This document shows, piece by piece, positions 1,436 to 46,895 of a stretch of 64,000 nt of DNA; the first letter of the stretch is position 1; each line of letters begins with the position of its first letter. The position numbers and the translations under genes were made by a program. The stretch spans positions 1 to 64,000 of IMG/VR virus record IMGVR_UViG_3300032050_000004; one strand, 5' to 3'. The notes under the pieces were generated by a model, which was not told the DNA's origin, searched no databases, and saw nothing but the letters and a program-made list of their open reading frames with translations.

Positions 1436-1436
1436 T

Positions 1437-16191: not shown

Positions 16192-16430
16192 CTCCCTGAT
16201 AAACATCCTGATTTTTACTGGATCAATCCTGAGAACTGGCGTTTTACAGGGGAGAGTTTTATAAAAGATATACGATATTAAATTTCTAATTTACATTTTT
16301 AGGGGAGAGATAAAAATGTATTTTACTTTTTTTAATTCGTATATCTTGTTTGGAATTTTTCCGCCTTCCAGCTCGAGTTCAGGCTGAGGAGAGGCTCAAG
16401 CGGGAGAAGTCAAAGTTCAGCGGGGGAGAA
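16192..16430. repeat. Phased intergenic element copy H (both halves, 19-bp spacer identical to copy G)
   Basis: CWG at 16196, 16208, 16218, 16229, 16247; AGATATACGA 16266; TCGTATATCT 16337-16346. Confidence 0.9.
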
Positions 16431-16725
16431 TAAAAACGAAAACCCCCACCTCTTGCGAAGCGGGGGTCTTATTTTATTTAGCGGGGGGAGTGCCATATAA
16501 GGCGAGTTCCATTTTCCCCTATCGAAGTGCCGTTGGGTCAATTCGGCTTGTCTATATCGGCTCGGATTTTAATGCCCTGCCTATCGGGAACCCTTTTAGT
16601 TTCTATATATTTTATAAAGATAATTATTAAGATTTAATTTCGGGGGGACTCTTGTTCATCTATATTCGGATTAAGCAATGTTTTGATTTTTTTTATCATA
16701 TAGGGTTATTTTGAATTTACTATCG

Positions 16726-16905
16726 CTAATATCGAAGTTTCGCACGTTTCATTCCTTTCGCAGCAGCCACACTTGGTCGATGCTTGTGATTGTTATATTT
16801 ATGTTTTCCCACATCACGATACGCCCAACAAGTTTCAGTAGATGCACAAGAAGTCATTGTAAGACCATATCCGATAATCATTACAGCAAGAAGGAGTTTT
16901 TTCAT
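16726..16905 (-). CDS. Small lipoprotein (59 aa, not in the track), paralogue-like to 15482-15676
   Basis: MKKLLLAVMIIGYGLTMTSCASTETCWAYRDVGKHK...; class-1 promoter at 16931. Confidence 0.65.
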   Translation of the reverse strand: MKKLLLAVMIIGYGLTMTSCASTETCWAYRDVGKHKYNNHKHRPSVAAAKGMKRAKLRY

Positions 16906-16976
16906 AGTGTTTGTTTTTTTTGTTATACTATCAATACTTTTTTAATTTAGAAAGGTTTAAGATATTTCAATTTTAT

Positions 16977-17246
16977 TTACAAATAATCACTTCCGTTATT
17001 GAGTGTTGTTTTACTTTTAATGAACTCCATTACTTTGTCAGCATAATAAGATGAAGTCAATTCGTTCAGATAGCTCAAAGTTTTCCAATAAGCATCATAT
17101 TCATTTGTCATAAAATTTCCTCCAACAACTTCCTTTTTACTATTGTAGTCAAGTGCTTTAATTGAAAGTGCATTTCCGTTCAAGTCAACCTTGATAATTC
17201 CTCCAACCGCATATTCTCCAATCTTAAATGATTTTGTTGCTTTCAT
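16977..17246 (-). CDS. Hypothetical phage protein
   Basis: ORF track; class-1 promoter at 17262. Confidence 0.55.
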   Translation of the reverse strand: MKATKSFKIGEYAVGGIIKVDLNGNALSIKALDYNSKKEVVGGNFMTNEYDAYWKTLSYLNELTSSYYADKVMEFIKSKTTLNNGSDYL

Positions 17247-17756
17247 AAGTTTGTTTTTTAATCAATACGATTTAATTAGAAAAAGGTCTAATTTTTATCA
17301 AAGAATTATAAATTAAACCACTAATCATAATTGATATAATCATATCGAACCAAACAAATAAAAACAAATCATCCCTTGTTGGTGTTTGAAATAATAAGAT
17401 ACTCATACAACAAATTGTATTTATTAGTAAAATACCAATCAAGGTTGCACCAATGTAATTTGACAAAGTTCTTTCCATATTTTTTTATTTTTTAGATTAG
17501 ATTAAAAAAGGGATATTGTTAATACCCCTTTTTATGTTTATCCTTTCTTGAATAAGTTTTTTTATCCCGATACACTTTTTCTTTGTGTATGTTATACATA
17601 CCCATTTCAAGCATAATATCTCGATGGATACCCTTATCCACTTTCACTTTTTCCTTTGCAGTATTTACCTTTTTCATTGTGTTTTAGTTTTTGTTGGTTC
17701 ATAGTTACAATCAATACTAATAAATTGTAAATAGGTTTAAGAAAAACAAAAAAAAT

Positions 17757-17890
17757 CCCCCCCAGAAACCAGCCCGTTTTTCTGGCTATGCTATAATATA
17801 GATATACGATATTAAAAAGGTATTTTACATTTTTTGCGTTATGCATTTTGTGTAATAAAATGTATTTTATTTATTTCAATTCGTATATCT
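17757..17890. repeat. Phased intergenic element copy I (29-bp spacer) at the minus-to-plus strand switch
   Basis: AGATATACGA 17800, TTACAT 17825, ATGTAT 17860, TCGTATATCT 17881-17890. Confidence 0.85.
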
Positions 17891-18016
17891 GAAATTTACA
17901 ATATCCAATTTTCAAGCACAAACACCTCAAAATATAATTTCATTTATTTTAATTTACCTTAAACCTTTTCCTATTAAATAAGTATTGATAATATAACCAA
18001 CAAAAAAACTACGAAA

Positions 18017-18664
18017 ATGAAAACCACCAACAAAACACTTAATGAACTTATCGCAAAGATTGTTTCAGTTTATGGATGTGATGAACAACAAGTATTGCGA
18101 CTAATTGAAATTACAACGGATATGTCAAAGGGTGCAAAATTTGCAACAATCAAAGATTATTCATCGGACAAATCTGAACATTCTGAAATTGCAAATCATT
18201 CTATTATCTTAAACTTTTCATATAAAAATATGAAAAAAGATGATAAAGAAACTTTGAGAACTTTTGATGTTAATTTAGTTGATGTAAATAAATTCAATTA
18301 TGATAGTATTGATACAAAAGGTATGGAATTGAGTGCATATAAAAATGAAGTAAGAAATTCACTACAAAATGCACTTTATGAAATAAATAACCCTAAACAA
18401 GTTGAAAGGGTAAATAATGATGATTACTTGAATGATATTTTAGTGTTTAATTGGAATACTGAAAGATTGTCAATAATTGGTCAAGGGGTAAAAAAAGAAA
18501 CAATAGTTGAAGGAGAATATAAAAAAGTAAAGTCAGCACCTTTGACAATAGCAAAAAAGTTGATAATGAAACAAGCAAATTTAAGAGTTGATAAATATCG
18601 TAGGTATGCAATAGACAATTTAAGTATTGTTAATTTGCAAGGGGAAAATTTGGAAATTCAATAA
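18017..18664 (+). CDS. Hypothetical phage protein
   Basis: 215-aa ORF behind a plus-strand class-1 promoter (17959); terminator at 18678-18705. Confidence 0.65.
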   Translation: MKTTNKTLNELIAKIVSVYGCDEQQVLRLIEITTDMSKGAKFATIKDYSSDKSEHSEIANHSIILNFSYKNMKKDDKETLRTFDVNLVDVNKFNYDSIDTKGMELSAYKNEVRNSLQNALYEINNPKQVERVNNDDYLNDILVFNWNTERLSIIGQGVKKETIVEGEYKKVKSAPLTIAKKLIMKQANLRVDKYRRYAIDNLSIVNLQGENLEIQ

Positions 18665-18774
18665 AACAAGGCAAATTAAAAGGGGAAAAAATTTCCCCTT
18701 TTTTTATATTAAATCTTAAACCTTTTTAATTAAAATAAGTATTGATATTGTAACCAACTAAAAAACTAAACACT

Positions 18775-18975
18775 ATGAGCAAGGTAAGATTAAAAAAATT
18801 CGCAGTAAATTTCTACAACAATCTTTTGAAGGAAGAAAAAAGAATAGAAATCGAAGCGTATCGCGAAAAGGAAGCAATCGAAATTGCAACTTTGGAATTG
18901 GACATCAAATGTTCGCATTGGACTGAAGAATTAGCAGAGTATTTTACACTACAAAAGGTTGAATTGGTCAAGTAG
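18775..18975 (+). CDS. Small hypothetical protein
   Basis: Class-1 promoter at 18716; terminator at 18996-19029. Confidence 0.55.
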   Translation: MSKVRLKKFAVNFYNNLLKEEKRIEIEAYREKEAIEIATLELDIKCSHWTEELAEYFTLQKVELVK

Positions 18976-21957: not shown

Positions 21958-24177
21958 ATGAAAAAAAGTAAAAAACCGAATGGTTATTGGACTAAGGAAA
22001 GGTGTCATCAAGAAGCTTTAAAATATAATAGCATAAGTGATTTACAGAAGGCAAATGGAAGTGTTTGCCTTATAGCTCGCAAAAATGGTTTCATGGAGGA
22101 AATATGTAGCCACATGGAAAGGCTAATAAAACCTAATGGATATTGGAACAAGGAGAGGTGTCATGAAGTGGCCCTAAAATATGAGAGCAGGGTTGAATTC
22201 CAAAAAAAAGACCATAGTGTTTACCAAGCGGCCAGAAGAAAAGGTTTTCTTGATGATATATGTGGACACATGGAAAAATTAGTTAAACCTAATGGATATT
22301 GGACACAAGAAAAATGTCACGAAGAAGCATTAAAATATAATAGAATAGTAGATTTTCAAAGAGGATCCTCATCGGCCTATCATGCTGCTTTAAAAAAAGG
22401 ATTTTTAGATAAAATATGTGGTCATATAAATTATGTATGTACCCCACATAAAAAGGTTGATTATGAACATCATAAAAAAATTGCTCTAAATTATAATAAT
22501 AGGCGTGATCTTAATAAGAACCATCCTTCTATTTATCAAATGATAATAAAAAGGGGATGGAAAGAACTTTTAGACCACATGGAATATATTTTTTTACCTA
22601 ATGGATATTGGACAAAAGAGAAAATTAGTGAGATTGCATTGAAATATGATAACTTCAAGGATTTTAAAAAAAATGATTTAAGGGCTTATGAGGCTATGTG
22701 TAAAAAAGGTTGGAAGGAGGAGTTGTGTCAACATTTCAAAGAAAATCCAAATGATTGGACAAAAAAAGAAAACTGTATAAGAGTTGCTTTAGAGTGCATA
22801 ACAAGAAGTGAATTATATAAAAAATTTCCCGGTGCATATCATTCAGCATTAAAAAATTGTTGGTTAGATGAAATATGTCAACACATGGGTCCCAAATCTT
22901 CATTAAATTATAGATATATATATGCATTTGAATTTGATGATAATCACGTATATGTTGGGTTGACGCATAACATGAACAAAAGATTATTAGATCACATTTC
23001 TGGAAAAAACTCCAAAAAATCTCAAGCGAATAAGCACTGGGAAAAAACAGAGTCTTGTTTTGAATTTAAACTAGTATACCCTGAAAGCTTTGATATGAAT
23101 GAAGCAGGATTGAAAGAAAATGAGGCTATAGAATTTTACAAAAAAAATAATTGGATTATTTTAAACAAAGCAAAAGCCGGTGGTTTGGGGGGGATGAAAG
23201 AAATCAATACTGAAAAGAATTTTTTAAAGATAGCATCAAAATACAAAACTTATTCAGAATTAAAAAGTAAAATTACCTCCCATTTTTTAACTAAGGCTAT
23301 AAAAAATGGATGGTTAGAAAAAACAGGTCTTATAGATGATAGAGTTAGAAAGTGGAATAAAGAGGATGCTTTTGAAGTTGCAAAAACCTGTAAAAACATT
23401 GCTGATTTACAAAAAAAATATAATGGTTTGTATAAGTATCTTAAAAAAGAGAATTTTTTAGAGGAAGCAATGTCACACAAAGTCATTAGAGTACCTTATT
23501 CGCAGAAATATACTCTTGAACAATGCACCGAAACTTGTGCTAAATTTAACAGTAAAAATGAATTTCGTAAAGCTGAATATGAAATGTATGAATGTTGTAG
23601 ATCAAACAAATGGCTTAAACTTATCAAAACTAAGATCGAAATAGAAAATAAATTGAATTATAAACCAAAATTGGCAATTAAAATAAATAAAAAAATAGAA
23701 TCTTATGATTTTGAGAATATAATAGAAATCGCTAAAAGTTATAATAAAAGATCAGATTTCAAAAATGATTATCCGGATATATTCAAAAAAGTAATTAAAA
23801 GTTGTCATAGAAATTTAAGAAAACAAATAATTGGTCATATGAAAAACGACTTGGATGGAAGAAGTAAGAAAAAATCAATCTGGACTTACGAAAAATGCTT
23901 GGAAGAGTCCAAAAAATACGATAGCAGGTGGGCTTTCCGGAAAGGCAGCAAGACCGCTTATGAACAATCAATTAAGAATGGTTGGGTTGCCGAATTTTTT
24001 CCTGAAATCAAGAAAAACAAATCCAAATGGACCTACGAAAGGTGTTTTGAGGAATCCAAGAAATACAAGACGAGAATCGAATTCATAAAGAGAAGCAAGA
24101 CTGCATATGTTAATGCATTCAAAAACGGATGGATTGACGACTTCATTCCCTCTTTAAGGAAACTAAAAGCAAAATAA
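21958..24177 (+). mobile_element. Free-standing GIY-YIG homing-endonuclease-like gene with 12 tandem helical repeats
   Basis: Central YIYAFEFDDNHVYVGLTHNMNKRLLDH; six W(T/N)KE.C...A.KY....F......Y..A...GW repeats on each side. Confidence 0.8.
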
Positions 24178-35780: not shown

Positions 35781-37703
35781 ATGAATTTACGTTTAGAAAT
35801 AAGAGAGATAATAAAATCCATTTTAAATGAGGGAAAAAACCCATTTGAAGTAATGGATTATTATTTAAAAAATGAACCTGCTCTTATAAAAAAACTTACC
35901 ACAAAAGACAATGCTTTATTAAAGAGATTAGCTTATTTGGATATTGAATACAATCCGGAAAAATTAGAAGTTGGTAAAATATTTCCTTGGATATTAAACT
36001 TATGGAAAAAGGGCGATCCTGTTATTTTAAATTTAATATCTGGTACTCCAGATGCCAATTTACTTAACAAGTTTAAATCCTCTCAGGAATTATTTAATAA
36101 AGGTTCTTTTAAAAAATCTATAGGTGTTACTGATATTCAAAAATTCAAGAATGTAAATGATTTTATAGAAAAGGTAAGTGCAGCATTTATTGAACCTACT
36201 GAACTACCGGCTTTTGCAAATTTTAATGCTGATGAGATTAATAAAGATATTAAGGAAGGTATAATTGCAAGAACTAATTTATCTAATGACAATTTCTTTA
36301 TCATAACTCCATTAAAGAAAAAAGGAGCTTGTAAATATGGAAATGTTCATAATAAAGAAAATCAATGGTGTACTTCTAAGGTTGAAAACAACGCTTTTGA
36401 TTCTTACAAAGATGGTATTCTTTATATTTTTATGGATAAAAAAGATAATCTTAAATCTAAGTATCAGTTATTTTACAAAGAGGGAAGATTTCAATTCATG
36501 GATGAATTTAACAGACCTTTTAATTATGAAGGGTTTTTTGATGAAAACATAGATGTTTTTCAAAAGTTGTTTCCAAGCGTAGTAAAAAATTTAGAAAACA
36601 AAGAAGAAGGAGATCCAAAACTATTTAGTCAAATTATTAATTATTTTCCAAGATATTATAAAGAAATTTATTTTACGAATATAGAGAAATTTTCAAAAGG
36701 ATTATTAGCAGATTTAATTCAAATAAATCAAGGTAAAATAAATCCTGAAGAATTCTTCTCAAGTGAAAAAGTTGAGGAAATAGCGGGATTTGAATATGAT
36801 GATTTTACAGTATACAAAGATAGAATTGTTTTTGATTGTAGTTTAGATTCTATTAATGATGTATTACCAAATTATTTTTGGGCTTATAAAAATGGATATC
36901 AGTACTATGAATTTAATTCGGAAGAATTTGATTATATGTACAATTACATAAAAGAAGAAGATAAACCCAAATGGATAAGTGTCATAAAAATTTTTGATAA
37001 AGATTTTAAAGATGATGAATTCAACGATGATGGGACACTATATAGATCAATTACTGACGGGGTTACTGAAAAATACTTTGATAAACTTTTATACAATTTT
37101 TCTGGAGCATATGAAGAGGCAGTAAATAACGCACAATCAACATGGATTGATGGGGTTATGGATAAATGTCCTTTTGGAATTAGAAATGATTCGATAACTT
37201 TTGAATATAAAAAAGTAGCAGAATATTGTTTGCAAAGTAGCTATCTAAATCCAGAAAAATTTTTTGATATTATAGAGCGATGGATGGACAAAGAAGGAAT
37301 AACTGATGATAATTATTATGATTATTTTAATAATCAAATAGATTATAGTGAGGCAGAAAAAGCACTATCAGATGGTATAGATGAAATTATTGAAAATATA
37401 AAAGACGATGAAGAGCTTCAAGGAAGTTTAATAAACAAGGAAAAATTGGATAAGTTTATTAAAGATCTTAAATTTATAAAAGGATACAATGAATATTATT
37501 TAGATACAGAATTTGCTAGGATTAAAATTAAAAAAATAGATTTAGAAAATGACAGAATATTTATTCAATATTTTGAATTAAAAAATGATAAAAAACATGA
37601 AGGTTGGATAGGTATAGATGATTTACCTAGATATTCTACAACTCCAATGTTATTTGAAATTAAAAAAATAAGAGAAATTATAAGAGAATTATTAAATAAA
37701 TAA
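35781..37703 (+). CDS. Large tagged protein with tag-like helices at both ends
   Basis: N-terminal LRLEIREIIKSILNE; C-terminal EIKKIREIIRELLNK; internal ACKYG...QWCTS...KYQL...QFMD block. Confidence 0.65.
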   Translation: MNLRLEIREIIKSILNEGKNPFEVMDYYLKNEPALIKKLTTKDNALLKRLAYLDIEYNPEKLEVGKIFPWILNLWKKGDPVILNLISGTPDANLLNKFKSSQELFNKGSFKKSIGVTDIQKFKNVNDFIEKVSAAFIEPTELPAFANFNADEINKDIKEGIIARTNLSNDNFFIITPLKKKGACKYGNVHNKENQWCTSKVENNAFDSYKDGILYIFMDKKDNLKSKYQLFYKEGRFQFMDEFNRPFNYEGFFDENIDVFQKLFPSVVKNLENKEEGDPKLFSQIINYFPRYYKEIYFTNIEKFSKGLLADLIQINQGKINPEEFFSSEKVEEIAGFEYDDFTVYKDRIVFDCSLDSINDVLPNYFWAYKNGYQYYEFNSEEFDYMYNYIKEEDKPKWISVIKIFDKDFKDDEFNDDGTLYRSITDGVTEKYFDKLLYNFSGAYEEAVNNAQSTWIDGVMDKCPFGIRNDSITFEYKKVAEYCLQSSYLNPEKFFDIIERWMDKEGITDDNYYDYFNNQIDYSEAEKALSDGIDEIIENIKDDEELQGSLINKEKLDKFIKDLKFIKGYNEYYLDTEFARIKIKKIDLENDRIFIQYFELKNDKKHEGWIGIDDLPRYSTTPMLFEIKKIREIIRELLNK

Positions 37704-38108
37704 TTATTTTTTTGACGAGAAAAAAATATCTTTAGCAACAAAAAATCCTTTCTTTTTTTCAAGGTATGTAACTTGCCTTCCTTTGTCAAAGTCAAAATGC
37801 CATACGTTTTCTTCATCTTTTAAATATATAACATCAAAATAATTATGAACTTTTTCATAATCGGTTTCTATTTGGTATGTTGTATGGACTTCGTAGCATT
37901 TATTGTTCTCTAAAAAAAATATGATATTGTTCAGCTTTACACCATCAACAGTATGAATATAATCTGGAAGATCATCCATTATCTCTATGTTCTTATTTAA
38001 TTTGACTGAACTTATTATCTCATCATGTGATTTTCCAAAATATTTATAGCCTTGAGATATTGATAAATAGGGGATTATGATAAAAAGAATAATAAATATT
38101 TTTTTCAT
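37704..38108 (-). CDS. Secreted hypothetical protein
   Basis: Signal peptide MKKIFIILFIIIPYLSISQ. Confidence 0.55.
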   Translation of the reverse strand: MKKIFIILFIIIPYLSISQGYKYFGKSHDEIISSVKLNKNIEIMDDLPDYIHTVDGVKLNNIIFFLENNKCYEVHTTYQIETDYEKVHNYFDVIYLKDEENVWHFDFDKGRQVTYLEKKKGFFVAKDIFFSSKK

Positions 38109-38188
38109 TTCTTAATTTATTTAGGAGACTAAATTAATAAAAAAATGATAATAAAAAAACATATAATATTTATTTAAAAGTTAAATAA

Positions 38189-38476
38189 ATGAATAAAATA
38201 GAATTAGAATATAAATTAAGAAATCAGATTAGGTCTATTTTAAGAGAATCTGTATCAGAAAATAGAGAAATTGCTTTAGGTCATGAAGAAATTGATGCTT
38301 TAGAAAAAACTCTAAAACCAGATGAGTATGTTTGGTTAGATGACAGAACCGGTAATTTAACTGGTGAAAAAGTAACAAAAAAAGAATATCTAAAAAGGAT
38401 GTTGAGACGTGCAGTAGATGATAAAAAGTGGGACAAAGTCCAATCTGCTATTTTATTTTTAGATACTCAAATTTAA
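38189..38476 (+). CDS. Tagged small protein (KLRNQIRSILRES)
   Basis: Tag; TATTTAT at 38167. Confidence 0.6.
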   Translation: MNKIELEYKLRNQIRSILRESVSENREIALGHEEIDALEKTLKPDEYVWLDDRTGNLTGEKVTKKEYLKRMLRRAVDDKKWDKVQSAILFLDTQI

Positions 38477-38580
38477 GAAAAAAATTTTTTTTAACAAATT
38501 GCGGTTTTTAAAAATTGGTTCATATTTATGTCCAATTATGTTGAAAAGACCTAGCCGACACACGAAGATTTATAAACCAA

Positions 38581-38620
38581 AAAAAGAAGAATCCCTTCCT
38601 AAAAGAAGGGATTTTTTTTT
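38581..38620 (+). terminator. Intrinsic terminator
   Basis: AATCCCTTC-CTAAAA-GAAGGGATT followed by a T-run. Confidence 0.75.
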
Positions 38621-38653
38621 GTCAAATTGTAACCTTTAAAAAAAATAAATTAT

Positions 38654-39484
38654 ATGAAAAACACAGAAATCTACAATGAATTAGTCCAAAAGATGAGAGA
38701 ATTCTTTTTGGCAAAGAACTTCAAAGAAGTTCCTGCACAGTCACGTCTGTCAATTTTAGCAGCGTGTGAAAATCCACATTCAGTAAAAACATTTGAATAT
38801 GGTGGTTTATTATGGCCCTTACCACAAACAGGTCAAATGTGGTTGGAATATGAACTTCTTAAAAATCCAGATTGGAATGGTGTTTTTTGTATTTCTACTT
38901 CTTATAGAGAAGAAAAAAATCCAATTCCCGGAAGACATGAATTGATTTTCCCAATGTTTGAATTTGAATCTAAGGGTGATATGAAAGTTCTTTTAAAATT
39001 AGAGAGTGAATTATTAGCACATTTAGGATTTGATTCTCCAATAGAAGTTAATTATGAAGATGTTTGCGAGGAATATGGTGGAGTAAAAATTTTAGAAAAT
39101 GAGCATGAAACAAAAATGTGGGAAGAAAAAGGATCTGTAATTTCACTTCAAAATTTCCCTTTAAGAACAAATCCTTTCTGGAACATGAAACATAATTCAG
39201 AGGGTATTTTCAATAAAGTCGATGTTATATTATACGGTCAAGAGACAATAGGATCTGCAGAGAGAAGTTGTGATGTAGAAAAAATGAGAGAGATGTTTTA
39301 TACCATTGAAAATGGTGGTTATTGCAATAAACTTTTTGAATTATTCGGTAAAGAGAGAGTAGAAAATGAATTAGAAGAGTTCTTAAATTTATATTTCTTT
39401 CCGAGATTTGGTGCTGGAATTGGTATGACTAGATTGGCAAGAGCATATCAATTAATGAAGGAAGAGAAATTAGTTATGGCATAA
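38654..39484 (+). CDS. Class II aaRS (Asn/Asp/Lys) catalytic-domain-only paralogue, asparagine-synthetase/EpmA-like
   Basis: Motif 1 MREFF...F.EV; motif 2 YREE...RH...F.M.EFE; motif 3 RFGAGIGMTRL; 276 aa with no anticodon OB domain. Confidence 0.85.
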   Translation: MKNTEIYNELVQKMREFFLAKNFKEVPAQSRLSILAACENPHSVKTFEYGGLLWPLPQTGQMWLEYELLKNPDWNGVFCISTSYREEKNPIPGRHELIFPMFEFESKGDMKVLLKLESELLAHLGFDSPIEVNYEDVCEEYGGVKILENEHETKMWEEKGSVISLQNFPLRTNPFWNMKHNSEGIFNKVDVILYGQETIGSAERSCDVEKMREMFYTIENGGYCNKLFELFGKERVENELEEFLNLYFFPRFGAGIGMTRLARAYQLMKEEKLVMA

Positions 39485-39534
39485 TAAATAATCCCCCCCA
39501 AGAAATTGGGGGGTTTTTTTATCTATTTATTTGT

Positions 39535-40104
39535 ATGAATTTATTGCGTAAAAAAATTAAGGAGATTATTCAGGAAATTTATTTGAATGAATTTACTGAC
39601 GATGAATATGCAACTATAAAATCCCAATATTCTGATAAAAGAATAATTTTAAGTCATGAAAATGAAATTGACTTTTATCCAAGAGATGAACATCAAAGAA
39701 TAACTTATAAACCCAAAGGTTTGTGGTATGGATTCGGAACTTCTTGGCTAGAGTGGGTCAGATCCGAAATGCCAGACTGGGAAAAAGATTATAAAAGTAT
39801 TTTCTTATTGGAAATTAATGAAAGTTCGGTTTTAAAATTAAGCAGTAAGGAAGAATTGATAGAATTTACTAAAAACTATTCTCCTTCACACAATTCAATA
39901 GGACCATCTTCAACATCTTATTCTGAAAGAAATTTGATTGATTGGTCAATGGTTGCAAATAAATATGCTGGCATAGAAATAAATCCTTATATCTATTCAG
40001 CAAGGATGGATGAATTTACAAATTGGTATTATCCATGGGACGTTGCTTCAGGATGTATTTGGAGAAAAAGTGGTATAAAATCAATTAATAAAATTGATTT
40101 ATAA
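39535..40104 (+). CDS. Tagged protein with conserved KP.GLWY / IDW..VA.KY.GIEI / WDVASGCIW domain
   Basis: Tag LRKKIKEIIQE; TATTTAT at 39524. Confidence 0.6.
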   Translation: MNLLRKKIKEIIQEIYLNEFTDDEYATIKSQYSDKRIILSHENEIDFYPRDEHQRITYKPKGLWYGFGTSWLEWVRSEMPDWEKDYKSIFLLEINESSVLKLSSKEELIEFTKNYSPSHNSIGPSSTSYSERNLIDWSMVANKYAGIEINPYIYSARMDEFTNWYYPWDVASGCIWRKSGIKSINKIDL

Positions 40105-40105
40105 T

Positions 40106-42514
40106 TTATTTTTCAATAACAAATCTTGATTGAAGAGTTTTTTCATCACCCAATATTACTAATTGATATAATCCATTACTTAATTTATTGAGGTCAAAAA
40201 CTAAATAATTTATATCTTTCAATAAATTTAAATTTTGACTAAACACCTCTCTTTGATTAGTATCATAAATTTTTAACAAATAATTTTCTTCTTTTTCACT
40301 AAAAATATTTATTTGAACTAGACCGGTAGAAGGATTGGGAAATAATTCCAAATGTTCTTTTGGGGTACTTTTTATTTCTCTGCAACTAAAATTTATAGGT
40401 AATGCTTTATTGAAACTTTGACCACAATCGTTTTTACTTTTTACTCTAATTCCATTTGTAGAATTTGAACCGAAATTTACATTTACATTTGTAAATGGAG
40501 TTGTCAATTTATTTGTGGTGGATGTAATTCCACCAGCAGTTATAGTTGATCCGAAAGGAGCTATCCACTCGTAATTAATTGCATTATAAACTGGTAGAAT
40601 TGAATATTGAACATTTTGTTGACCGGCACATGGATTTGCATTTCCTGTAATTACTCCGGGTAATTGAGGTATTGATTTTATTAATTGAATTCGATTGCTA
40701 CTAGATCCACATACATTACTTCCGTTTACTTGCAATGTAACATCAGTAAAATTATTATCAAAATTGATATAGACGGAATCTGTTCCTTGTCCAAATGCAA
40801 TAATTCCTCCATTACCTATAAAACTCCAATTATACTGAACTCCTCCAACTTCATTTACGCTATAAATCTCAGCAGAATTACAAACTCCATAAAAATTGCC
40901 TTTAATTTTACTCGGAGTAGATGGTGCAGTTTTTACCCAAACAAAAAGGGATTCAGCAGGAGAAGTTCCACAAGAGTTATTTGCTGTAACTACCAAATGT
41001 CCATTGGTAGTTCCAGCATTTACGCTAATTGAATTTGTATTTGAATTTCCGACCCAACCACTAGGTAAAATCCAAGTATAAGAAGTTGCTCCGGGAACAG
41101 CAGTACAAGTATATGTAGCTGTATTACTAATATTTAAACAAATAGTTCTCGGTCCTAATATTGTATCTGGTTTAGTTGGACATGGTAAACAAGGCGACAA
41201 ACAACTTGATGTGTTAATGTTGTTTAACATTAAATTTGTTGGTTGTGGACCGAATCCGTTATTAAAATTAATTCCAACACTACTTAACAAATGACAATAA
41301 GACATTATTGTTCCACCATTGCTTGGTATTGGTCCCACTAAACACGAACCACTAGAATAACCAGCTGTTGGACCACATCCATCTATTGCGGTGTTATTAC
41401 CATTCCAAACACAATCATGTGTGTGTCTTGAACCTAATAGATGACCTTGTTCATGACTTAAAACATTTACTGTCCAAGAATAAGTTGGAACCACTTGATA
41501 AGTTGTATTGATATCGGAATATGCCATTTTGTATCTCGATTGAGATGAGCATAAGCCATCGACGTAAGCAATTCCTCCACTACCTGTATATCCAACTAAA
41601 TGTGCAAGATCACCATTGAAAGAAGTTCTATAGTTTCCAAATTGATTTAAGAAGTCACCAGTACTTGGTCCTGTATAAGGATCTGTTGTTGTCCAAACGA
41701 AAATAGTTGATAAATTAATATTTATTCCATCGTTTGCATACAGTGTTGCAACTTGGTTAAAAGCTCCTTGAATATATGTGTTTACGTTTGCAACATTTCC
41801 TTTATTTAAAAAAATATCATAATCAACCTCATAATAAAAATCTACACAATTTATTGAAGTCGTATTTATTGGATATTTAGATATTTGATTATTTGAAATT
41901 TTTCCGGGAACATTCAAATAATCACAATTATAATTTGGGATGTCGACTAAATTTACATCTCCATACATAATATATCGATCTTCTTTTAATAATTTACCTA
42001 TTGTTACATTATCAAAATCGTCGCTATAAAATCCAATAATTTCATTATTAGAAAATGTAAATGATGCAATTGAATAATAATTTCCATTCACTATGCCACG
42101 ATAGTGAACAATAGTATCTTTAATTTCAAAACAAGAGTTTTTATCTGTACTTAAATAAAAATCATCAGATAAAATATCTGTTTTATATAATAATAATTCA
42201 ATACAATAATTTTCTACTACAGGTATTTTTAATCTCAGTAAATCAGGTTGAGATTCTATTATTTGATTTTTTACAGAGTTGTCAATGCTTAATAATGTAT
42301 AATCTCCAAGTTCATTGAAAATGTTTTCTGGCTCTCTTTCCCTAGACAATTGAAAGGGTTCAAAAGTTTGAAAATAATTATTTGCATCTACCAGAGTATT
42401 AATTTTCTTTGACACTTGTCCAATCTGTTCTCTATCTTTAGAATATGAATCTATTGGTAAAAAGACAATAAATATCCATGCAATTAAATTGCTAAGAAGA
42501 CTAAAATTTTTCAT
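40106..42514 (-). CDS. Secreted M12/reprolysin-like zinc metalloprotease with PKD-like repeats and a T9SS type A C-terminal domain
   Basis: Signal peptide; HEQGHLLGSRH followed by Met-turn IMSY; three Ig-like repeats; CTD LFPNPSTG...YDTNQREV...LNKLSNGLYQL...RFVIEK. Confidence 0.88.
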   Translation of the reverse strand: MKNFSLLSNLIAWIFIVFLPIDSYSKDREQIGQVSKKINTLVDANNYFQTFEPFQLSREREPENIFNELGDYTLLSIDNSVKNQIIESQPDLLRLKIPVVENYCIELLLYKTDILSDDFYLSTDKNSCFEIKDTIVHYRGIVNGNYYSIASFTFSNNEIIGFYSDDFDNVTIGKLLKEDRYIMYGDVNLVDIPNYNCDYLNVPGKISNNQISKYPINTTSINCVDFYYEVDYDIFLNKGNVANVNTYIQGAFNQVATLYANDGININLSTIFVWTTTDPYTGPSTGDFLNQFGNYRTSFNGDLAHLVGYTGSGGIAYVDGLCSSQSRYKMAYSDINTTYQVVPTYSWTVNVLSHEQGHLLGSRHTHDCVWNGNNTAIDGCGPTAGYSSGSCLVGPIPSNGGTIMSYCHLLSSVGINFNNGFGPQPTNLMLNNINTSSCLSPCLPCPTKPDTILGPRTICLNISNTATYTCTAVPGATSYTWILPSGWVGNSNTNSISVNAGTTNGHLVVTANNSCGTSPAESLFVWVKTAPSTPSKIKGNFYGVCNSAEIYSVNEVGGVQYNWSFIGNGGIIAFGQGTDSVYINFDNNFTDVTLQVNGSNVCGSSSNRIQLIKSIPQLPGVITGNANPCAGQQNVQYSILPVYNAINYEWIAPFGSTITAGGITSTTNKLTTPFTNVNVNFGSNSTNGIRVKSKNDCGQSFNKALPINFSCREIKSTPKEHLELFPNPSTGLVQINIFSEKEENYLLKIYDTNQREVFSQNLNLLKDINYLVFDLNKLSNGLYQLVILGDEKTLQSRFVIEK

Positions 42515-42625
42515 TATTAAAAATATTAAATTATTAAATACAAATATACAAATACAAATTCAAACAAAGAACAAATGAAGTTCTAAGTTACGACACATAT
42601 ATAATGAAAAATACCCTAAAAAAAA

Positions 42626-42925
42626 TTATAACGATTCTTCTCCAGAACCAGAGTTGTTCTCGTTTTTGTTTTTAGAAGTCAGATATTTGTCGACAGATGC
42701 AATTCCGAATGCACCTAGTGTAATCCACAAAAATCCGTCATAAATAAATTCATTAATGTGTAATTGTTGTCCCATTGCTCCTGTAACTATGTCTACAACG
42801 AAGCAAACAACCATCATGATGAAAGAACTAAATCCAACAACTGATTTTTCATTAATATCGTTGTCATCCATAAACATTTTCTTGAAGAAGTTTTCTACTT
42901 TCTTCTGATTTTCTTTAGTAGTCAT
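42626..42925 (-). CDS. Two-TM membrane protein
   Basis: Two hydrophobic helices; late-type motif upstream. Confidence 0.55.
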   Translation of the reverse strand: MTTKENQKKVENFFKKMFMDDNDINEKSVVGFSSFIMMVVCFVVDIVTGAMGQQLHINEFIYDGFLWITLGAFGIASVDKYLTSKNKNENNSGSGEESL

Positions 42926-42991
42926 TGTGTTTTGTTTTGTTTTGTTTTGTTTAAATAAATATAGAGAAATAATTAAAAAAAAATATGTAAA

Positions 42992-43618
42992 TTAAGCAGA
43001 GTAGCCAAATTCCATAATACTATCTCCGTTACCGTAAATGTTTTTTGCTTTTACTTTTTTAGACAATATTTTAAAATTATTACCTAAATGTGCTTTTCCG
43101 TGATCGACAGCATATTGCCTTACAGTTGTAACCCAGTCTCCATCATTTATTACAGATAGTTTTTCATCTTGTTTTGGAGTTTCCTTGAGTCTTTTTAATT
43201 CATCATAAATGAAATCATAATATTGGGAAGAATTTTGCCAATTACCTACACCATTGGGTAACTTTCCATATTTAAGTATAAAAGCTTTATGTTTTTCTAA
43301 TTCATCTATTTTTTCCGATATTGTCAAAATTCTTGGAATAGATCTATAAATAGTAACAGTAGCATTGGGTTTATCTTTCAAAGATTGAATTATGCTTACT
43401 GCCAATTGATCGTTTGGATCTCCTGTACCAAAATATCTTGCTGCATTCGAAGTGTAAATATCTTCACCAAAAGAGTTGGTCATATTATAAATTGGACTGG
43501 AGTATGAATCGCTGGCATGTGGTGCCTGATGTTCTCCTCTATAATCAAAAGGTCCAAGATTACTATAAACTTCTTTTATAGTAGAACGTATTAAATTTAT
43601 TAATTTAATTTTAGACAT
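42992..43618 (-). CDS. Tagged protein with TIYR...GDWVT...YA domain (possible ART-like fold)
   Basis: Tag LINLIRSTIKE; VTIYRSIP, INDGDWVT..RQYA..HG, GDSIMEFGY. Confidence 0.5.
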   Translation of the reverse strand: MSKIKLINLIRSTIKEVYSNLGPFDYRGEHQAPHASDSYSSPIYNMTNSFGEDIYTSNAARYFGTGDPNDQLAVSIIQSLKDKPNATVTIYRSIPRILTISEKIDELEKHKAFILKYGKLPNGVGNWQNSSQYYDFIYDELKRLKETPKQDEKLSVINDGDWVTTVRQYAVDHGKAHLGNNFKILSKKVKAKNIYGNGDSIMEFGYSA

Positions 43619-43647
43619 CTCAAATAAATAGTGTCTTAAATATTAAA

Positions 43648-44028
43648 TCAATATGTGCTCAAGTTAAATTCCTGAGAATAATTTCCGGATGTTGATAGTA
43701 TTATACAACGATAATTTCGGTATGGAAACAAGGAATTATAATCAACATAAGTTGTAATTGGGGTATTAAAAAACATGGGGGTAACAATTTTCCACCATCT
43801 TCCATTTATAAATTCTGTTCCAAAACTATTATCTTGAACCAATAAATAATAACCATTGTTTTGTGGACAAAAAAGATAAAAATTAACCCTTACAATAGCT
43901 GGTGAATAAAATTTATTAATAGTATAGTTATTGTAATCTACTCTTTCGTTGCAATAATAATCATCATCTATGTAACATGAATTTACAAACACAGATAAGA
44001 ATAATAATATACCAAATAATCTTTTCAT
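43648..44028 (-). CDS. Lipoprotein
   Basis: MKRLFGILLFLSVFVNSC. Confidence 0.6.
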   Translation of the reverse strand: MKRLFGILLFLSVFVNSCYIDDDYYCNERVDYNNYTINKFYSPAIVRVNFYLFCPQNNGYYLLVQDNSFGTEFINGRWWKIVTPMFFNTPITTYVDYNSLFPYRNYRCIILSTSGNYSQEFNLSTY

Positions 44029-44062
44029 TTTTTTACTAAATATAACTATAAAAATAAAAAAA

Positions 44063-44329
44063 TCATCTAATAGTATCTCCTTCTTGCCAGTAACTGGAAA
44101 GCCAAGTTGGAATTTTCACATAAACATATCTTTTCTTTTCATAGTTATACATAGAGACATTAGAGAAATTTTTATCACCTTCATTAATGGATATGATTAC
44201 ATATTCTCTGTATTCATCTACCCTGAATTCATCTAAAAGTTTATTTGATGTTTTTAACCCTTTAGTATCTCTACAACTAAAAGAAATCAATAAAAAAATA
44301 AAAAAACTTATTAATATTTTGTATTTCAT
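44063..44329 (-). CDS. Lipoprotein
   Basis: MKYKILISFFIFLLISFSC. Confidence 0.6.
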   Translation of the reverse strand: MKYKILISFFIFLLISFSCRDTKGLKTSNKLLDEFRVDEYREYVIISINEGDKNFSNVSMYNYEKKRYVYVKIPTWLSSYWQEGDTIR

Positions 44330-44527
44330 TTTGAATAGATTTGATAGAATTTAGGACAATAATTTGTTTAAGTAAGTATGATTATGTGATTGATTTACAA
44401 ATAAATAGTTTAATATTATAATTATTTCCAAAATAAAATGATATTTATAGGTGTCAAATTTGGGTGAACAATAGTTTATTGTAGGCGAATAGTTTATTAT
44501 CTTTGACTAAACTTTAAAAAAAAGACC

Positions 44528-45388
44528 ATGAAAAACAAATTAATTCTTTTCGGCTTAATTACTATGATTTATAGTTGTGGGCCAGATTATAAACTCGAAG
44601 TTGAAAATTTAAAAAACGAACAAGACAGTTTATTATCTATTCAAATGCAAAAGGATTCTCTTATGAATTCTTATATAAATGATTTTAATGAAATACAATT
44701 AAGTATAGAATCTTTAGCTCAACAAGAAAAATTACTGGTTGAACAATCTAAAAGCAATGAACTTAAGCTAGATGCAAAAACTAAAATATTAAACAACATT
44801 GAATCATTTAGAAAGATTATTGATCAGAATAAGAATAAAATTTCATCACTTCAACGAAAAATTAAGAATTATAGTTTAAAAATTGATGAGCTAGATAAGA
44901 TGATAGCAAATTTAAATTTACAACTATTAGAGAGAGATTCTAGCATAGCTTTATTATCTGAAAACATAAATAAATTAAACTCAAAAATTGCTAGTGTTGA
45001 ATTAGAACTCACAAATTCAAAGAATGATAATGAGCAAAAGAAGCAAGAAATAGCTGACAAGACAATAAAATTACACACTGCTTATTATACAGTTGGTACT
45101 TACAGGGAATTAAAAGACAAGAAGGTATTATCTAAAGAAGGTGGTATTCTAGGTTTAGGTTCCAGCAAATCTTTCACTAGTGATTTGAATAATGAATCAT
45201 TTACAAAAATTGATTATACCTCTACTAAATTAATAGATATTATTTCTAAGAAAATAGAGATAATTAGTATACACCCATCTGATTCCTACAAAATAATAAA
45301 CAATGGCAAACAAATAATGGCTATTGAAATATTGGATCCGGAAAGATTTTGGCAAGCATCTAAATATTTAGTGGTTGTCAAAAGTTAA
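44528..45388 (+). CDS. Bacteroidota coiled-coil lipoprotein (Cbp1-adhesin-like)
   Basis: Lipobox IYSC; long coiled coil; AYYTVGT..ELK...V..KEGG.LG and HP..SY...D...FW..SKYLVV tail. Confidence 0.65.
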   Translation: MKNKLILFGLITMIYSCGPDYKLEVENLKNEQDSLLSIQMQKDSLMNSYINDFNEIQLSIESLAQQEKLLVEQSKSNELKLDAKTKILNNIESFRKIIDQNKNKISSLQRKIKNYSLKIDELDKMIANLNLQLLERDSSIALLSENINKLNSKIASVELELTNSKNDNEQKKQEIADKTIKLHTAYYTVGTYRELKDKKVLSKEGGILGLGSSKSFTSDLNNESFTKIDYTSTKLIDIISKKIEIISIHPSDSYKIINNGKQIMAIEILDPERFWQASKYLVVVKS

Positions 45389-45773
45389 AATAAAAAAAAT
45401 TTTTTTTATCCCCCCTACACAAAATAGGGGGATTTTTTTTTGATATTTATTTCCGTGAACGAATTTTTAAGAACAAAAATCAGAGATATAGTTTATAATG
45501 ATTACAATCATTTGATAATTGATTCTGCCAGATATCTAGAGTTCGAGGATTTAATTATAAAAGAATTATATCACAACCATTATTTAGAGGAAGGTTTTTC
45601 AATTGAAACAATTGTAAGGTCAATCTCTAATAATATAAAAAAATATTAAATTCAAATTATTTGGTTTTTATTGATAATCAATATTTTATGTAAAACTTTG
45701 ATTTTCTGTAAAAAAACAATAATTTTGGGTTCATATTTATAATCAATTTACAATCAAATTAAAAACATTTAAG

Positions 45774-46895
45774 ATGAAAAAACTTATTTTATTATTATTT
45801 GCATTTTGTCTATATCAAACTGCAAATGCTCAAACAGAAACCCTTGTATTAAAGAAATTTGACAAATGGTCATTTGGTTTTAACATAGGTGCAACAAACC
45901 CTAATTCTGACGCAACAGACAAAAAAACTTCTTTTAATGTTTTGAGTCCGAAATTTGCCTATGGATTTACACTCAGCAAACAGATTTCTCATTTCAGTGG
46001 ATTTGAAATTAATTACACTACTGGGAAAATGGGAGTTGACTATTCTCCATATACATTCGAGTCTAAATTTCAACAGATTGACGGGAGATTTAGATTAAAC
46101 TTTACAAATGGTCAAATATTAGCTAACTACAAAAAAACTCAGATATACGGATTTGTAGGTGTAGGTATGATCAACTATCAAACCTCATTGTTTAATGATT
46201 CCTCTGTAACAGAGTTAAAATCTGACTGGGTACACGTTATTCCATTTGGTTTCGGTTTTAAGAAAAGGATGGGACAAAAATCATCTTTGAATCTTGAATT
46301 CGCATATAATGGGATGAATACAGACATTTTAGATGGAAATAAAGTTGCTGGTAGTGAAAAAGACGGATACACAAATGTTAAGTTGGGATATCAATATACT
46401 TTTGGAAAGAAAAAGAAACCACTTGAGTGGGATGAGCCATTATCATATTTTAAACCACTTGCTGAACACAGTGTTGATACTTTAGTTATCATAAAAAAAG
46501 AAACTGTAGTTGTTGGTGATACATCTGGAAAACAACCGATAAATTCTTTGACTATTTTTTACGACACTGGTGATCATTTGATAAATGGAATATATTCTCA
46601 GGACCTTAATAAGATTTTAAGTCAGCTAAAACAAAACAAAGATGGCTGGATAGAAATTCTTGCTTTCTGTGATTCCACTGGCTCTGAAAAGACCAACAAC
46701 AAACTAGTAGTGCAGAGATCAAGAATTATAAAAGATTATTTTATAAATAACGACATTGATGATGATAGAATCAAGGTATATAATTATGGAATGGAGTTTG
46801 CAAAAGATCCCATACTGTCAAAAGATAGAAAGGTTATCATTAGATATTGGAAAAGCCTAGGAGAAAAAACCAACAGCAGTTGGTACAGAAAATAA
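45774..46895 (+). CDS. OmpA-family outer membrane protein (beta-barrel plus peptidoglycan-binding domain)
   Basis: Signal peptide; beta strands ending KLGYQYTFG; C-terminal FYDTG...FCDSTGSEKTN.KL..QR..I..YF...DRKV. Confidence 0.8.
   Translation: MKKLILLLFAFCLYQTANAQTETLVLKKFDKWSFGFNIGATNPNSDATDKKTSFNVLSPKFAYGFTLSKQISHFSGFEINYTTGKMGVDYSPYTFESKFQQIDGRFRLNFTNGQILANYKKTQIYGFVGVGMINYQTSLFNDSSVTELKSDWVHVIPFGFGFKKRMGQKSSLNLEFAYNGMNTDILDGNKVAGSEKDGYTNVKLGYQYTFGKKKKPLEWDEPLSYFKPLAEHSVDTLVIIKKETVVVGDTSGKQPINSLTIFYDTGDHLINGIYSQDLNKILSQLKQNKDGWIEILAFCDSTGSEKTNNKLVVQRSRIIKDYFINNDIDDDRIKVYNYGMEFAKDPILSKDRKVIIRYWKSLGEKTNSSWYRK

Follow-up and report, generated by a model that had tools for sequence, protein, structure and literature searches.

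Does a phage of Bacteroidota encode cargo of its own for the host's type IX secretion system (T9SS), and what might it gain from doing so? The question is raised by a single 802-amino-acid open reading frame (ORF) at 40106-42514 on the minus strand of the window, the stretch of 64,000 nucleotides that was analysed from an IMG/VR virus record, which was called as an M12-type metalloprotease precursor that is predicted to be secreted. The reading favoured here, to which we assign a probability of roughly 70%, is that a lytic-type jumbo phage, T4-like and infecting a freshwater member of the Bacteroidota, took up this accessory gene from Bacteroidota long ago and has retained it under selection, and that the gene's product is a zymogen exported by the T9SS.

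Genomic context of the protease gene

The virus record is 222 kb in length, with a CheckV completeness of 87%. It contains two tail sheath genes, a tail fibre gene and genes for a major head protein of gp23 type (match to phrog_138, E 2e-68), another virion structural protein, DNA polymerase, ribonucleotide reductase, a helicase and a homing endonuclease. The phage hallmark genes are distributed along the full 222 kb, and the structural module lies at 160-215 kb, about 120 kb from the protease gene. The flanks of the protease gene match phrog_29758, phrog_8582 and phrog_2579; the protease itself matches no PHROG family. The GC content of the gene (0.30) is close to that of the genome (0.293), as opposed to 0.38-0.43 for the loci of bacterial homologues; its GC3 is 0.147 versus 0.188 +/- 0.039 for the ORFs of the genome, and no composition step was found at the gene. 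The phage origin that an initial annotation of this DNA had assigned to the contig is thus upheld by the length and content of the record and by the phage-family flanks.

Megablast of positions 36000-46000 against the GenBank phage collection returned no match, and tblastn searches of that collection with the full-length protein, with its C-terminal domain (CTD; residues 715-802) and with a second CTD protein of the same genome were likewise negative; the tblastn result is silent on divergent CTDs, which require profiles, and a profile search found one in phage immuto. The border sequences of the gene block had no match among 233 loci.

A putative host-type promoter motif, TATATTTG (42541-42548, minus strand), which fits the Bacteroidota -7 consensus TAnnTTTG, precedes the ATG by 27 nucleotides, and several TTTG motifs lie beyond it in the upstream direction. 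Across the genome, motifs of the TAnnTTTG type are found upstream of 12 ORFs, an 11-fold enrichment. The genes neighbouring the protease carry a different motif, CTATTTAT, which also occurs upstream of ORFs in the structural region at 176-216 kb. TATATTTG is put forward only as a candidate for the protease gene's own promoter, read by host RNA polymerase. A scan for sigma-70 promoters and terminators performed no better than on shuffled sequence, and no terminator-like site was found after the protease stop codon (40106-40108).

Domain architecture of the predicted product

The predicted product has five parts, all encoded on the minus strand: it opens with a signal peptide and an ADAM-type prodomain, continues with an adamalysin-like catalytic domain and three PKD_6 domains, and ends in a type A T9SS CTD. 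The Sec-type signal peptide (residues 1-25; 42440-42514), MKNFSLLSNLIAWIFIVFLPIDSYS, has one lysine in its n-region and a 16-residue hydrophobic core followed by DSYS and then lysine; its identification is based on a hydrophobicity and charge heuristic and holds at that level only. In the AlphaFold (AF2) model this region is a helix at residues 4-18, followed by pLDDT below 50 at residues 20-26, and an N-terminal signal (MKNF...SFS, then QD) is kept in all orthologues. The signal peptide of the initial annotation is borne out to this extent.

The prodomain (residues about 30-200; 41915-42427), which the initial annotation overlooked, is beta-rich and modelled with pLDDT above 90. Structural alignment by VIA-align matched model residues 58-444 to the prodomain and catalytic domain of ADAM17 (Z 27.8, 322-334 residues aligned), and residues 50-436 to profragilysin-3 (Z 20). 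An invariant cysteine, C197, follows the prodomain. Because residues 30-200 have an ADAM-type prodomain fold, the product is read as a predicted zymogen.

In the catalytic domain (residues about 217-444; 41183-41866), Pfam Reprolysin_5 matches residues 238-407 with 76 bits against a cut-off of 27 (E 5e-21), and Reprolysin_2, Reprolysin_3 and Reprolysin_4 also exceed their cut-offs. The zinc motif HEQGHLLGSRH (residues 354-364; 41423-41455) agrees with the reprolysin-type HExGHxxGxxH signature that had been noted initially, and the Met-turn, GTIMSYC, contains M404 (41303-41305); H354, E355, H358, H364 and M404 are invariant across 81 homologues. The aspartate that directly follows the third zinc histidine in HExxHxxGxxHD is absent, the sequence being H364-T365-H366-D367 (HTHD is invariant in the family), so the protein is classed as reprolysin-like (Pfam Reprolysin_5) and not as a canonical adamalysin. 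In structure comparisons of the model, the catalytic fold matched snake-venom metalloproteinases, ADAM8, ADAM33 and ADAMTS proteins (Z 19-20, rmsd 2.3-2.7, 183-192 residues aligned). The gene is accordingly described as encoding a predicted ADAM/adamalysin-like zinc endopeptidase zymogen.

Downstream of the catalytic domain are three PKD-like Ig-fold domains (residues 446-712; 40379-41179), which give substance to the PKD-like repeats first annotated: three stretches match PKD_6 of Pfam (E 8e-42), a profile match links the region to the PKD_6 array of Aureispira GhpA, and the AF2 model depicts the domains as beta-sandwiches.

The sorting domain and the host

A linker modelled with pLDDT below 50 (residues 712-718) precedes the T9SS type A sorting domain (residues 721-802; 40109-40354). 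This domain matches PF18962 (Por_Secre_tail) at residues 724-800 of 802, with 34.4 bits (cut-off 27), and TIGR04183 of NCBIfam with 30 bits, or 33.9 bits in a six-frame scan of the genome (cut-off 23). The TIGR04183 search was the check proposed with the initial annotation, and its type A CTD is sustained by both models. Since the domain matches exceed curated thresholds, they are not chance resemblances. The CTD is modelled as a seven-strand beta-sandwich (residues 721-800, pLDDT about 88-93), its PNP and G-x-Y columns are conserved in the homologue alignment, and a PDB profile match was obtained to the 75-residue CTD chain 8glk_D.

Several indirect signals bear on the host. The named homologues of the protease, which run to thousands of proteins and, in genomes, to at least 590 loci, are all from Bacteroidota; the protease gene has the TAnnTTTG promoter-type motif; a Shine-Dalgarno-like motif precedes only 3 of the 273 ORFs of the genome; many of its predicted signal peptides are followed by glutamine; and the nearest cultured relative, judged by the head protein, infects Flavobacterium. 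From these signals we infer that the host belongs to the Bacteroidota and that it has a T9SS.

According to a published account (PMC12618676), T9SS cargo requires both a signal peptide and a CTD. At the level of sequence, then, all that phage-encoded T9SS cargo would need is supported here. The proposal of the initial annotation, that the phage encodes cargo for the T9SS of its host, stands as regards the signal peptide, the CTD and the phage contig; a T9SS in the host is presumed.

Conservation and origin

Orthologues were found on two other phage-like contigs, with 72-73% identity and the same gene order, in related phages that are 73-77% identical in nucleotides. Between phage orthologues, dN/dS comes to 0.16-0.21 overall, with 0.05 for the catalytic domain; these values are rough because dS is about 1, near saturation. 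They point nonetheless to strong purifying selection on the protease core. The stretch is present in 20 sequencing runs from 15 studies (lake metagenomes, 2017-2025), and in no RNA run. In contigs assembled from three runs, the gene is free of indels, and of the 9 SNPs there 8 are synonymous. One contig (L026), 99.99% identical, lacks 101 bp in the prodomain region, a frameshifting deletion which, if real, means that the gene is dispensable at least sometimes.

A conserved neighbouring gene, which is tRNA-synthetase-like, has at least 600 matches in IMG/VR; the protease and the other neighbours are absent from the best 80 of these loci, which marks the protease as accessory rather than core. 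Truly syntenic relatives were obtained only by searching for contigs that encode the protein. In a phylogenetic tree, the phage clade is nested among bacterial homologues. Judged by its sequence, the gene is a phage accessory gene ("moron" type) of cellular origin, encoded between phage genes.

Comparison with known systems

A report of T9SS cargo encoded by a phage had appeared in 2020 (PMC7468147), a precedent that the initial annotation overlooked, and the predicted cargo described here adds a solid further example. "Cryophage" (Bellas et al. 2020, PMC7468147), a Bacteroidetes phage of 76 kb that came from cryoconite, likewise encodes products with a T9SS type A sorting domain at their end; in its authors' reading, these genes let the phage hijack the T9SS of its host for enzyme secretion. 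The putative cargos of Cryophage, namely an endoglucanase, a GH39 glycoside hydrolase and a PA14-domain protein, are encoded in hypervariable metagenomic islands, whereas the predicted cargo of the present 222-kb T4-like phage is a protease zymogen whose enzymatic core is under strong purifying selection and whose CTD alone is variable.

The bacterial relatives of the product are M12 proteins of Bacteroidota with PKD_6 domains and a T9SS CTD, named in NCBI as "M12 family metallo-peptidase" or "T9SS type A sorting domain-containing protein", which share its domain order, its invariant catalytic and cysteine columns and 40-47% full-length identity. The phage copy differs in being on a virus, in its 29-30% GC content and in having three PKD units, while many bacterial proteins have four to five units and about 1,060 amino acids. 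A literature search found no biochemically characterised member of this bacterial family. With the ADAM17 zymogen and the ADAM and snake-venom adamalysins (M12B), the product shares the prodomain and catalytic fold, HExxHxxGxxH and the Met-turn (for the catalytic domain alone, Z about 20, rmsd 2.5 and 188 residues with snake-venom metalloproteinases and ADAM8), but identity is only 19-22%; the phage protein is without disintegrin, Cys-rich and transmembrane modules, has threonine in place of aspartate after the third histidine, and continues into PKD_6 domains and a CTD. Two Bacteroides fragilis proteins, profragilysin-3 and metalloproteinase II, resemble it as Bacteroidota proteins with a prodomain and an adamalysin-like catalytic domain (Z about 20, model residues 50-436), although identity is 10-14% and fragilysin has neither PKD domains nor a T9SS CTD; no sequence-level family match of these two proteins to the phage protein was found, nor any sign of a shared substrate or toxicity.

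Flavobacterium phage vB_FspM_immuto and a number of IMG/VR contigs also encode proteins with a type A CTD above cut-off; what these phages have in common with the present one is a head protein of gp23 type or the conserved gene next to the protease. The passenger of these CTDs is a cohesin-like binding module and not an enzyme. The immuto record labels its CTD protein only as "cohesin domain-containing protein".

Alternative explanations

Four other readings of the locus were weighed. The protein might be exported by Sec alone and act in the periplasm, for example on envelope proteins at lysis, with the CTD an ancestral vestige. The CTD is indeed by far the least conserved part, being 32-54% identical between orthologues when the other domains are 76-85% identical, with dN/dS of 0.34-0.96; in one pair it is 32% identical and the other domains 84-85%. 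Such fast evolution could reflect relaxed constraint rather than function. However, the CTDs of bacterial homologues also diverge, to 15-26% identity, so that low values are to be expected even of functional CTDs; each of the three orthologues continues to match PF18962 and preserves the PNP and G-x-Y columns; the tail of roughly 80 residues has been lost in none of them despite dS of about 1; and a second small protein of this genome consists of little beyond a signal peptide and a CTD. Export by Sec alone is considered unlikely. A neutral or decaying passenger gene, derived from a host and with no part in the phage life cycle, would agree with the deletion in contig L026 and with the absence of the protease from all 80 of the best IMG/VR loci that share its conserved neighbour. 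Against this, catalytic-domain dN/dS is 0.05 between phages that differ at about 25% of nucleotides, the SNPs within the population are nearly all synonymous, intact copies occur in runs from a period of eight years, the composition of the gene is fully adjusted to the phage and its catalytic residues are all invariant, and we regard such a passenger as quite improbable.

Ig-like domains are common on phage particles, and the PKD/Ig-like domains and beta-sandwich tail of the protein could by analogy decorate the virion, with the protease cutting a protein surface layer at adsorption. T9SS sorting domains have been described close to head and tail genes in gut phages (De Jonge et al., PMC6949934), and the tail complex of phage N4 was among the Foldseek matches, with a low TM-score. 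The conserved N-terminal Sec signal peptide speaks against a place on the particle, as it would take the protein out of the cytoplasm, the site of virion assembly, and so do the distance of the gene from the structural module, its upstream motif of host type rather than the CTATTTAT of the structural region, and its lack of a PHROG family; a virion-associated enzyme is therefore judged very improbable. Least probable by far is that the locus is host DNA, through chimeric assembly or a provirus flank miscalled as viral. The protein family is overwhelmingly bacterial, and IMG/VR includes some proviruses and misclassified contigs, several proviruses being among the related records. A host-derived contig, which had been named at the outset as grounds for rejecting the proposal, is nevertheless excluded by the flanking phage families and the hallmark genes over the whole 222 kb, by the lack of a composition step, and by the same gene order having been assembled independently in several samples and archives; the highest identity to a bacterial homologue is, moreover, only about 45%.

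Proposed role and significance

Under the favoured reading of a T9SS-exported zymogen, the gene would be transcribed during infection from its own host-type promoter, and the precursor would pass the inner membrane by the Sec pathway. The T9SS translocon of the host would then recognise the CTD, resulting in passage over the outer membrane; the CTD would be removed and the protein either released or anchored to the surface, with the PKD domains as a stalk; and removal of the prodomain outside the cell would yield the active protease. Two speculative roles are ranked about equally. The protease may trim surface proteins such as T9SS-delivered adhesins and phage receptors, so that superinfection, or loss of progeny on infected cells and debris, is reduced; or digestion of external protein may feed the infected cell through the long cycle of a jumbo phage.

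The survey of CTD proteins on phage contigs that had been recommended initially was run on a small scale. It found a CTD match in 14 of 49 related IMG/VR records (about 29%) in addition to phage immuto, and several IMG/VR records have M12 and CTD domains in one ORF. The six-frame TIGR04183 scan also revealed the second CTD protein of the present genome, which had escaped the initial annotation. These sequence matches suggest that T9SS cargo is common in large freshwater phages. Such cargo was called a "unique occurrence" in the 2020 Cryophage report (PMC7468147), and in view of the frequency found here a systematic survey would be worthwhile. A broader proposal, which is tentative and to our minds rather doubtful, is that genes for T9SS cargo form a class of phage accessory genes which is widespread in viruses of Bacteroidota and has gone mostly unnoticed, including those for proteases, cohesin-like binders and small CTD proteins; that the ADAM-like zymogen is a phage "sheddase" which, once exported by the T9SS, clips T9SS-delivered adhesins or receptors of the infected cell, blocking superinfection or releasing progeny; and that a fast-evolving or swapped CTD tunes each cargo to the secretion machinery of its host.

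Resistance of flavobacteria to phages commonly maps to gliding and T9SS genes (bioRxiv 10.1101/2020.10.02.323337; PMC9804748), which would make the T9SS a two-way interface between such phages and their hosts. Conserved, intact and modular, the protease gene lends itself well to testing. For viral contigs, the presence of a type A CTD is in practice a cheap marker of a Bacteroidota host. If the protease is secreted as predicted, the virus would be loading an enzyme of its own into a phylum-specific secretion machine, and thereby rewriting the surface or the surroundings of the infected cell.

Domain structure of the protease

The gene at window 40106-42514 (-) is one uninterrupted open reading frame of 802 codons, in which profile searches recovered the domains that the initial annotation had read from the sequence. 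The reprolysin-type HExGHxxGxxH protease is represented by a Pfam M12 peptidase match (Reprolysin_5, residues 238-407, E 5e-21; three related models likewise exceed their cut-offs), the zinc-binding motif HEQGHLLGSRH (residues 354-364) and the Met-turn GTIMSYC; the PKD-like repeats are three PKD_6 domains (E 8e-42), and the type A C-terminal sorting domain (CTD) of type IX secretion systems (T9SS) is Por_Secre_tail (PF18962) at residues 724-800 (34.4 bits, cut-off 27). The NCBIfam model TIGR04183, which had been proposed as a check of the CTD, scored 30 bits against the protein (cut-off 23) and, when the genome was scanned in six frames, 33.9 bits. The predicted signal peptide has a Sec-type shape according to a heuristic, and in the AlphaFold model of this N-terminus a helix gives way to a disordered stretch. 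Because the open reading frame, Pfam, TIGR04183, motif and N-terminal evidence agree, the original description stands as written.

The catalytic residues show no variation in an alignment of 81 sequences. The residue after the third zinc-binding histidine is threonine, not the aspartate of canonical adamalysins, and HTHD is invariant across the family; for this reason the protein is called reprolysin-like here, not a canonical adamalysin.

An AlphaFold2 model built on 81 homologues (mean pLDDT 87.5) contains a separate beta-rich domain at residues 30-200, missed by the initial annotation, and a short flexible linker (residues 712-718) between the PKD domains and the CTD. In comparisons with the PDB, residues 58-444 of the model align with the prodomain and metalloproteinase of the ADAM17 zymogen, the fold being common to both (Z 27.8, 322-334 residues, rmsd 3.6), and residues 50-436 with profragilysin-3 of Bacteroides fragilis (Z about 20), while the catalytic domain alone aligns with snake-venom adamalysins, ADAM8, ADAM33 and ADAMTS (Z 19-20, rmsd about 2.5). 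From the fold match of prodomain plus catalytic domain to the ADAM17 zymogen and profragilysin-3, the product is most likely a zymogen, consisting of a signal peptide, an ADAM-type prodomain, an adamalysin-like catalytic domain, three Ig-like PKD spacers, a linker and the CTD. Directly after the prodomain is an invariant cysteine, C197, where the consensus of bacterial homologues is C-G-T; it is reminiscent of cysteine-switch motifs, a resemblance offered as a lead.

Phage context and conservation of the gene

The window is the first 64 kb of one contig of 222,069 bp that is classed as a virus in IMG/VR, and the contig is a phage. It is linear, with a CheckV completeness of 87%, 29.3% GC and three tRNA genes, and PHROG scans identified two tail sheath paralogues, a collagen-like tail fibre, a virion structural protein, a DNA polymerase, the large subunit of ribonucleotide reductase, a helicase and a homing endonuclease. 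The gp23-type major head protein belongs to phrog_138 (E 2e-68), and the nearest cultured relatives by this protein are Flavobacterium phage vB_FspM_immuto and Microcystis phage Mel-JY01, each with about 43% identity. A 739-aa open reading frame (window 21958-24177 (+)) consists of five repeats of one PHROG family of unknown function (phrog_20046, E 2e-97).

The initial annotation had considered that the contig might be host-derived, against which speak the phage-family genes flanking the protease (phrog_29758 and phrog_8582 on one side, phrog_2579 on the other), its base composition and its retained gene order. The gene has GC 0.30 and GC3 0.147, compared with 0.293 for the phage genome and 0.188 +/- 0.039 for the GC3 of its open reading frames; the loci of the closest bacterial homologues have GC 0.38-0.43. 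The protease had no match among PHROG families, nor at BLAST level in 50,697 GenBank phage records. The two closest proteins among 5.8 billion (72-73% identity, 802 and 804 aa) are encoded on short metagenomic contigs that are 73-77% identical to the window in nucleotide sequence and repeat its gene order, with a 276-aa tRNA-synthetase-like gene and open reading frames of 187/189, 95 and 134 aa. The two contigs are from related phages that have retained the gene.

DNA nearly identical to the window was present in 20 public runs from 15 lake or fresh-water studies (2017-2025). In contigs of three of these runs the protease gene has no indel and nine SNPs, eight of them synonymous; the sole non-synonymous change, P718Q, is in the linker. 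In a JGI contig (L026; 3300008114, Ga0114347_1000837; 31.6 kb, 99.99% identical to the window) 101 bp are missing from the gene (window 41971-42071), a frameshift that splits it into frames of 161 and 626 codons, and a further 170 bp (window 38664-38833) are missing from the synthetase-like gene. No repeats were found flanking either deletion, and neither deletion was present in the above three runs; they may be rare variants or assembly faults. In two independent runs of 2025 (X16 and X20), contigs break at window 40024/40063 and 42834/42868 with the same unrelated loose ends, bordering a block that comprises the protease and the greater part of the 99-aa gene upstream, which suggests co-occurring phage variants that differ in the protease cassette or its flanks. 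The loose ends matched none of the loci collected.

Divergence of the sorting domain

Among the window gene and its two orthologues, dN/dS (Nei-Gojobori) comes to 0.16-0.21 for the whole gene. By region it is 0.05 (catalytic domain), 0.13-0.16 (PKD domains), 0.16-0.24 (signal peptide and prodomain) and 0.34-0.96 (CTD), all of these ratios being rough because dS is about 1. Within the phage lineage (the window and contigs L016 and L019) the CTD is 32-54% identical and the other domains 76-85%; L016 and L019 share 84-85% in the prodomain, catalytic and PKD parts but only 32% in the CTD (window 40109-40354), which is compatible with a CTD swap. This unusually fast divergence is the main argument for regarding the CTD as a vestigial tail, but in every orthologue the tail has its full length and is still recognised by the family model. 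The divergence may reflect a generally loose constraint on CTD sequence, since bacterial homologues share just 15-26% identity there, or it may be due to domain swapping or adaptation to the machinery of different hosts.

Origin of the protease family

The protease family is very large and bacterial: thousands of matches share its architecture, and the contigs that carry them reach 5.9 Mb. Matching genome loci number at least 590 (best identity 45%), and all named ones are Bacteroidota, including Flavobacteriales, Saprospiraceae, Chitinophagaceae, Weeksellaceae and Lewinellaceae, except for two Acidobacteriota MAG contigs. A maximum likelihood tree (quick search) of the prodomain and catalytic region with 109 rows places the window protease and its two orthologues in a single clade (SH-aLRT 99). 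With support of 80-94, this clade is joined by two further metagenomic contigs, and one of these (L025) has genes for a DNA methyltransferase of a phage family and an exonuclease as well as a Tad3-like gene; the whole group adjoins sequences from Chitinophagaceae and unclassified Bacteroidota. Copies on IMG/VR contigs occupy at least four and at most nine separate positions in the tree, showing repeated exchange between Bacteroidota and their viruses.

Host and predicted promoters

Five independent signals point to a Bacteroidota host: the taxonomy of homologues, the scarcity of Shine-Dalgarno motifs, the type of signal peptide, the kinship to vB_FspM_immuto and a TAnnTTTG promoter-type motif that is enriched upstream of open reading frames. 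Shine-Dalgarno-like motifs precede only 3 of 273 open reading frames, and their near-absence is a trait of Bacteroidota. The genome encodes 23 predicted signal-peptide proteins, many with glutamine right after the predicted cleavage site, as is typical of Bacteroidota. Of the two cultured phages closest in head protein, one infects Flavobacterium.

Three classes of upstream motif stand out. The first, TTAAACCTT followed after about 14 nt by (C)GTATTGAT, is located 20-60 nt upstream of 18-20 small open reading frames (window 863-18775) and is restricted to the first 19 kb of the genome; this bipartite motif looks like a phage-specific promoter class, probably an early one. The second, CTATTTAT, is located 12-38 nt upstream of 31 open reading frames genome-wide, including the neighbours of the protease at 39535 and 42992 and several in the structural region at 176-216 kb. 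The third, TATATTTG, fits the Bacteroidota -7 consensus perfectly and precedes 12 open reading frames, among them the protease, 27 nt upstream of its ATG, which suggests that the protease is transcribed by unmodified host polymerase, independently of its neighbours.

Other predicted T9SS cargo and neighbouring genes

The phage encodes a second CTD protein 2.7 kb past the window end (genome 66743-67291 (-), also L001:6743-7291 and L014:1489-2037), a 182-aa product with a signal peptide, a small N-terminal part (about 85 residues, no family match) and a CTD (PF18962 46 bits, TIGR04183 47 bits). It adjoins a thymidylate synthase-like gene and a gene for a 466-aa signal-peptide protein without a family match.

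A survey of CTD proteins covered 49 IMG/VR records, mostly fragments, picked solely for sharing the synthetase-like gene. CTD matches were present in 14 at E <= 1e-4 and above cut-off in 13. Several of the matches are cohesin-domain proteins of about 637 aa that end in a CTD; such proteins are encoded a few kb from the synthetase-like gene, the distance being 1.2-4 kb for L209:10026-11939, L216:10679-12565 and L180:2167-4077. Flavobacterium phage vB_FspM_immuto likewise encodes a cohesin-domain protein with an unannotated terminal CTD (MW353176.1:12691-13422, 47 bits). Relatives of the M12 domain were found in 47 IMG/VR records, 19 of them with a TIGR04183 match at E <= 0.001; by comparison of coordinates, both domains are in one open reading frame in three records with the CTD above cut-off (703, 738 and 763 aa) and in about a dozen with a sub-threshold tail (about 590-632 aa). 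One complete huge phage (L045, IMGVR_UViG_3300031951_000002; 321 kb, direct terminal repeats, 100% complete) has three tandem M12-family paralogues of 602, 673 and 2,306 aa (L045:9956-20725) and two CTD proteins elsewhere.

Envelope-targeted phage proteins cluster around the protease (window 37704-46895): signal-peptide or lipoprotein-like products of 37704-38108(-), 43648-44028(-), 44063-44329(-) and 44528-45388(+), and an OmpA-like outer-membrane protein with OMP_b-brl and OmpA domains (45774-46895(+)). The neighbouring synthetase-like protein (window 38654-39484 (+), 276 aa) has a class II aminoacyl-tRNA-synthetase core (PF00152, E 2e-12; phrog_29758, E 4e-95) and is too short to be any full synthetase. 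At least 600 IMG/VR stretches contain homologues with 69-84% identity, a conservation that is unusually strong for a phage gene without a known role.

Possible role of the protease

To the extent that sequence analysis can, it supports the interpretation of the protease as phage-encoded T9SS cargo. T9SS cargo is known to require a Sec signal and a CTD and is passed to shuttle proteins after translocation (PMC12618676). In the most likely mechanism, the protease precursor would be synthesised inside the infected cell, use Sec for export and be translocated through the T9SS of the host; the CTD would then be removed, leaving the protease released or surface-anchored on its PKD stalk, and loss of the prodomain would activate it. 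Flavobacterial phage resistance commonly results from mutations in gliding and T9SS genes (bioRxiv 10.1101/2020.10.02.323337; PMC9804748), which indicates that the T9SS-built surface matters to these phages. Speculatively, the protease could trim this surface or, about as plausibly, simply supply peptides to the infected cell.

There are precedents for such cargo. The 76-kb 'Cryophage' has three T9SS-tagged genes, for an endoglucanase, a GH39 glycoside hydrolase and a PA14-domain protein, for which hijacking of the host system was proposed and which was termed a unique occurrence (Bellas et al. 2020, PMC7468147), and T9SS sorting domains occur in gut phage contigs (De Jonge et al. 2019, PMC6949934). 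A literature search found no experimental test of T9SS hijacking by phages and no report of a phage-encoded T9SS protease. Phage-encoded T9SS cargo is already known as a kind and the protease is a well-documented added example. Its value is that it offers a clean, conserved test case, that it is a predicted zymogen whose fold resembles ADAM, and that T9SS cargo seems common among the large phages of Bacteroidota.
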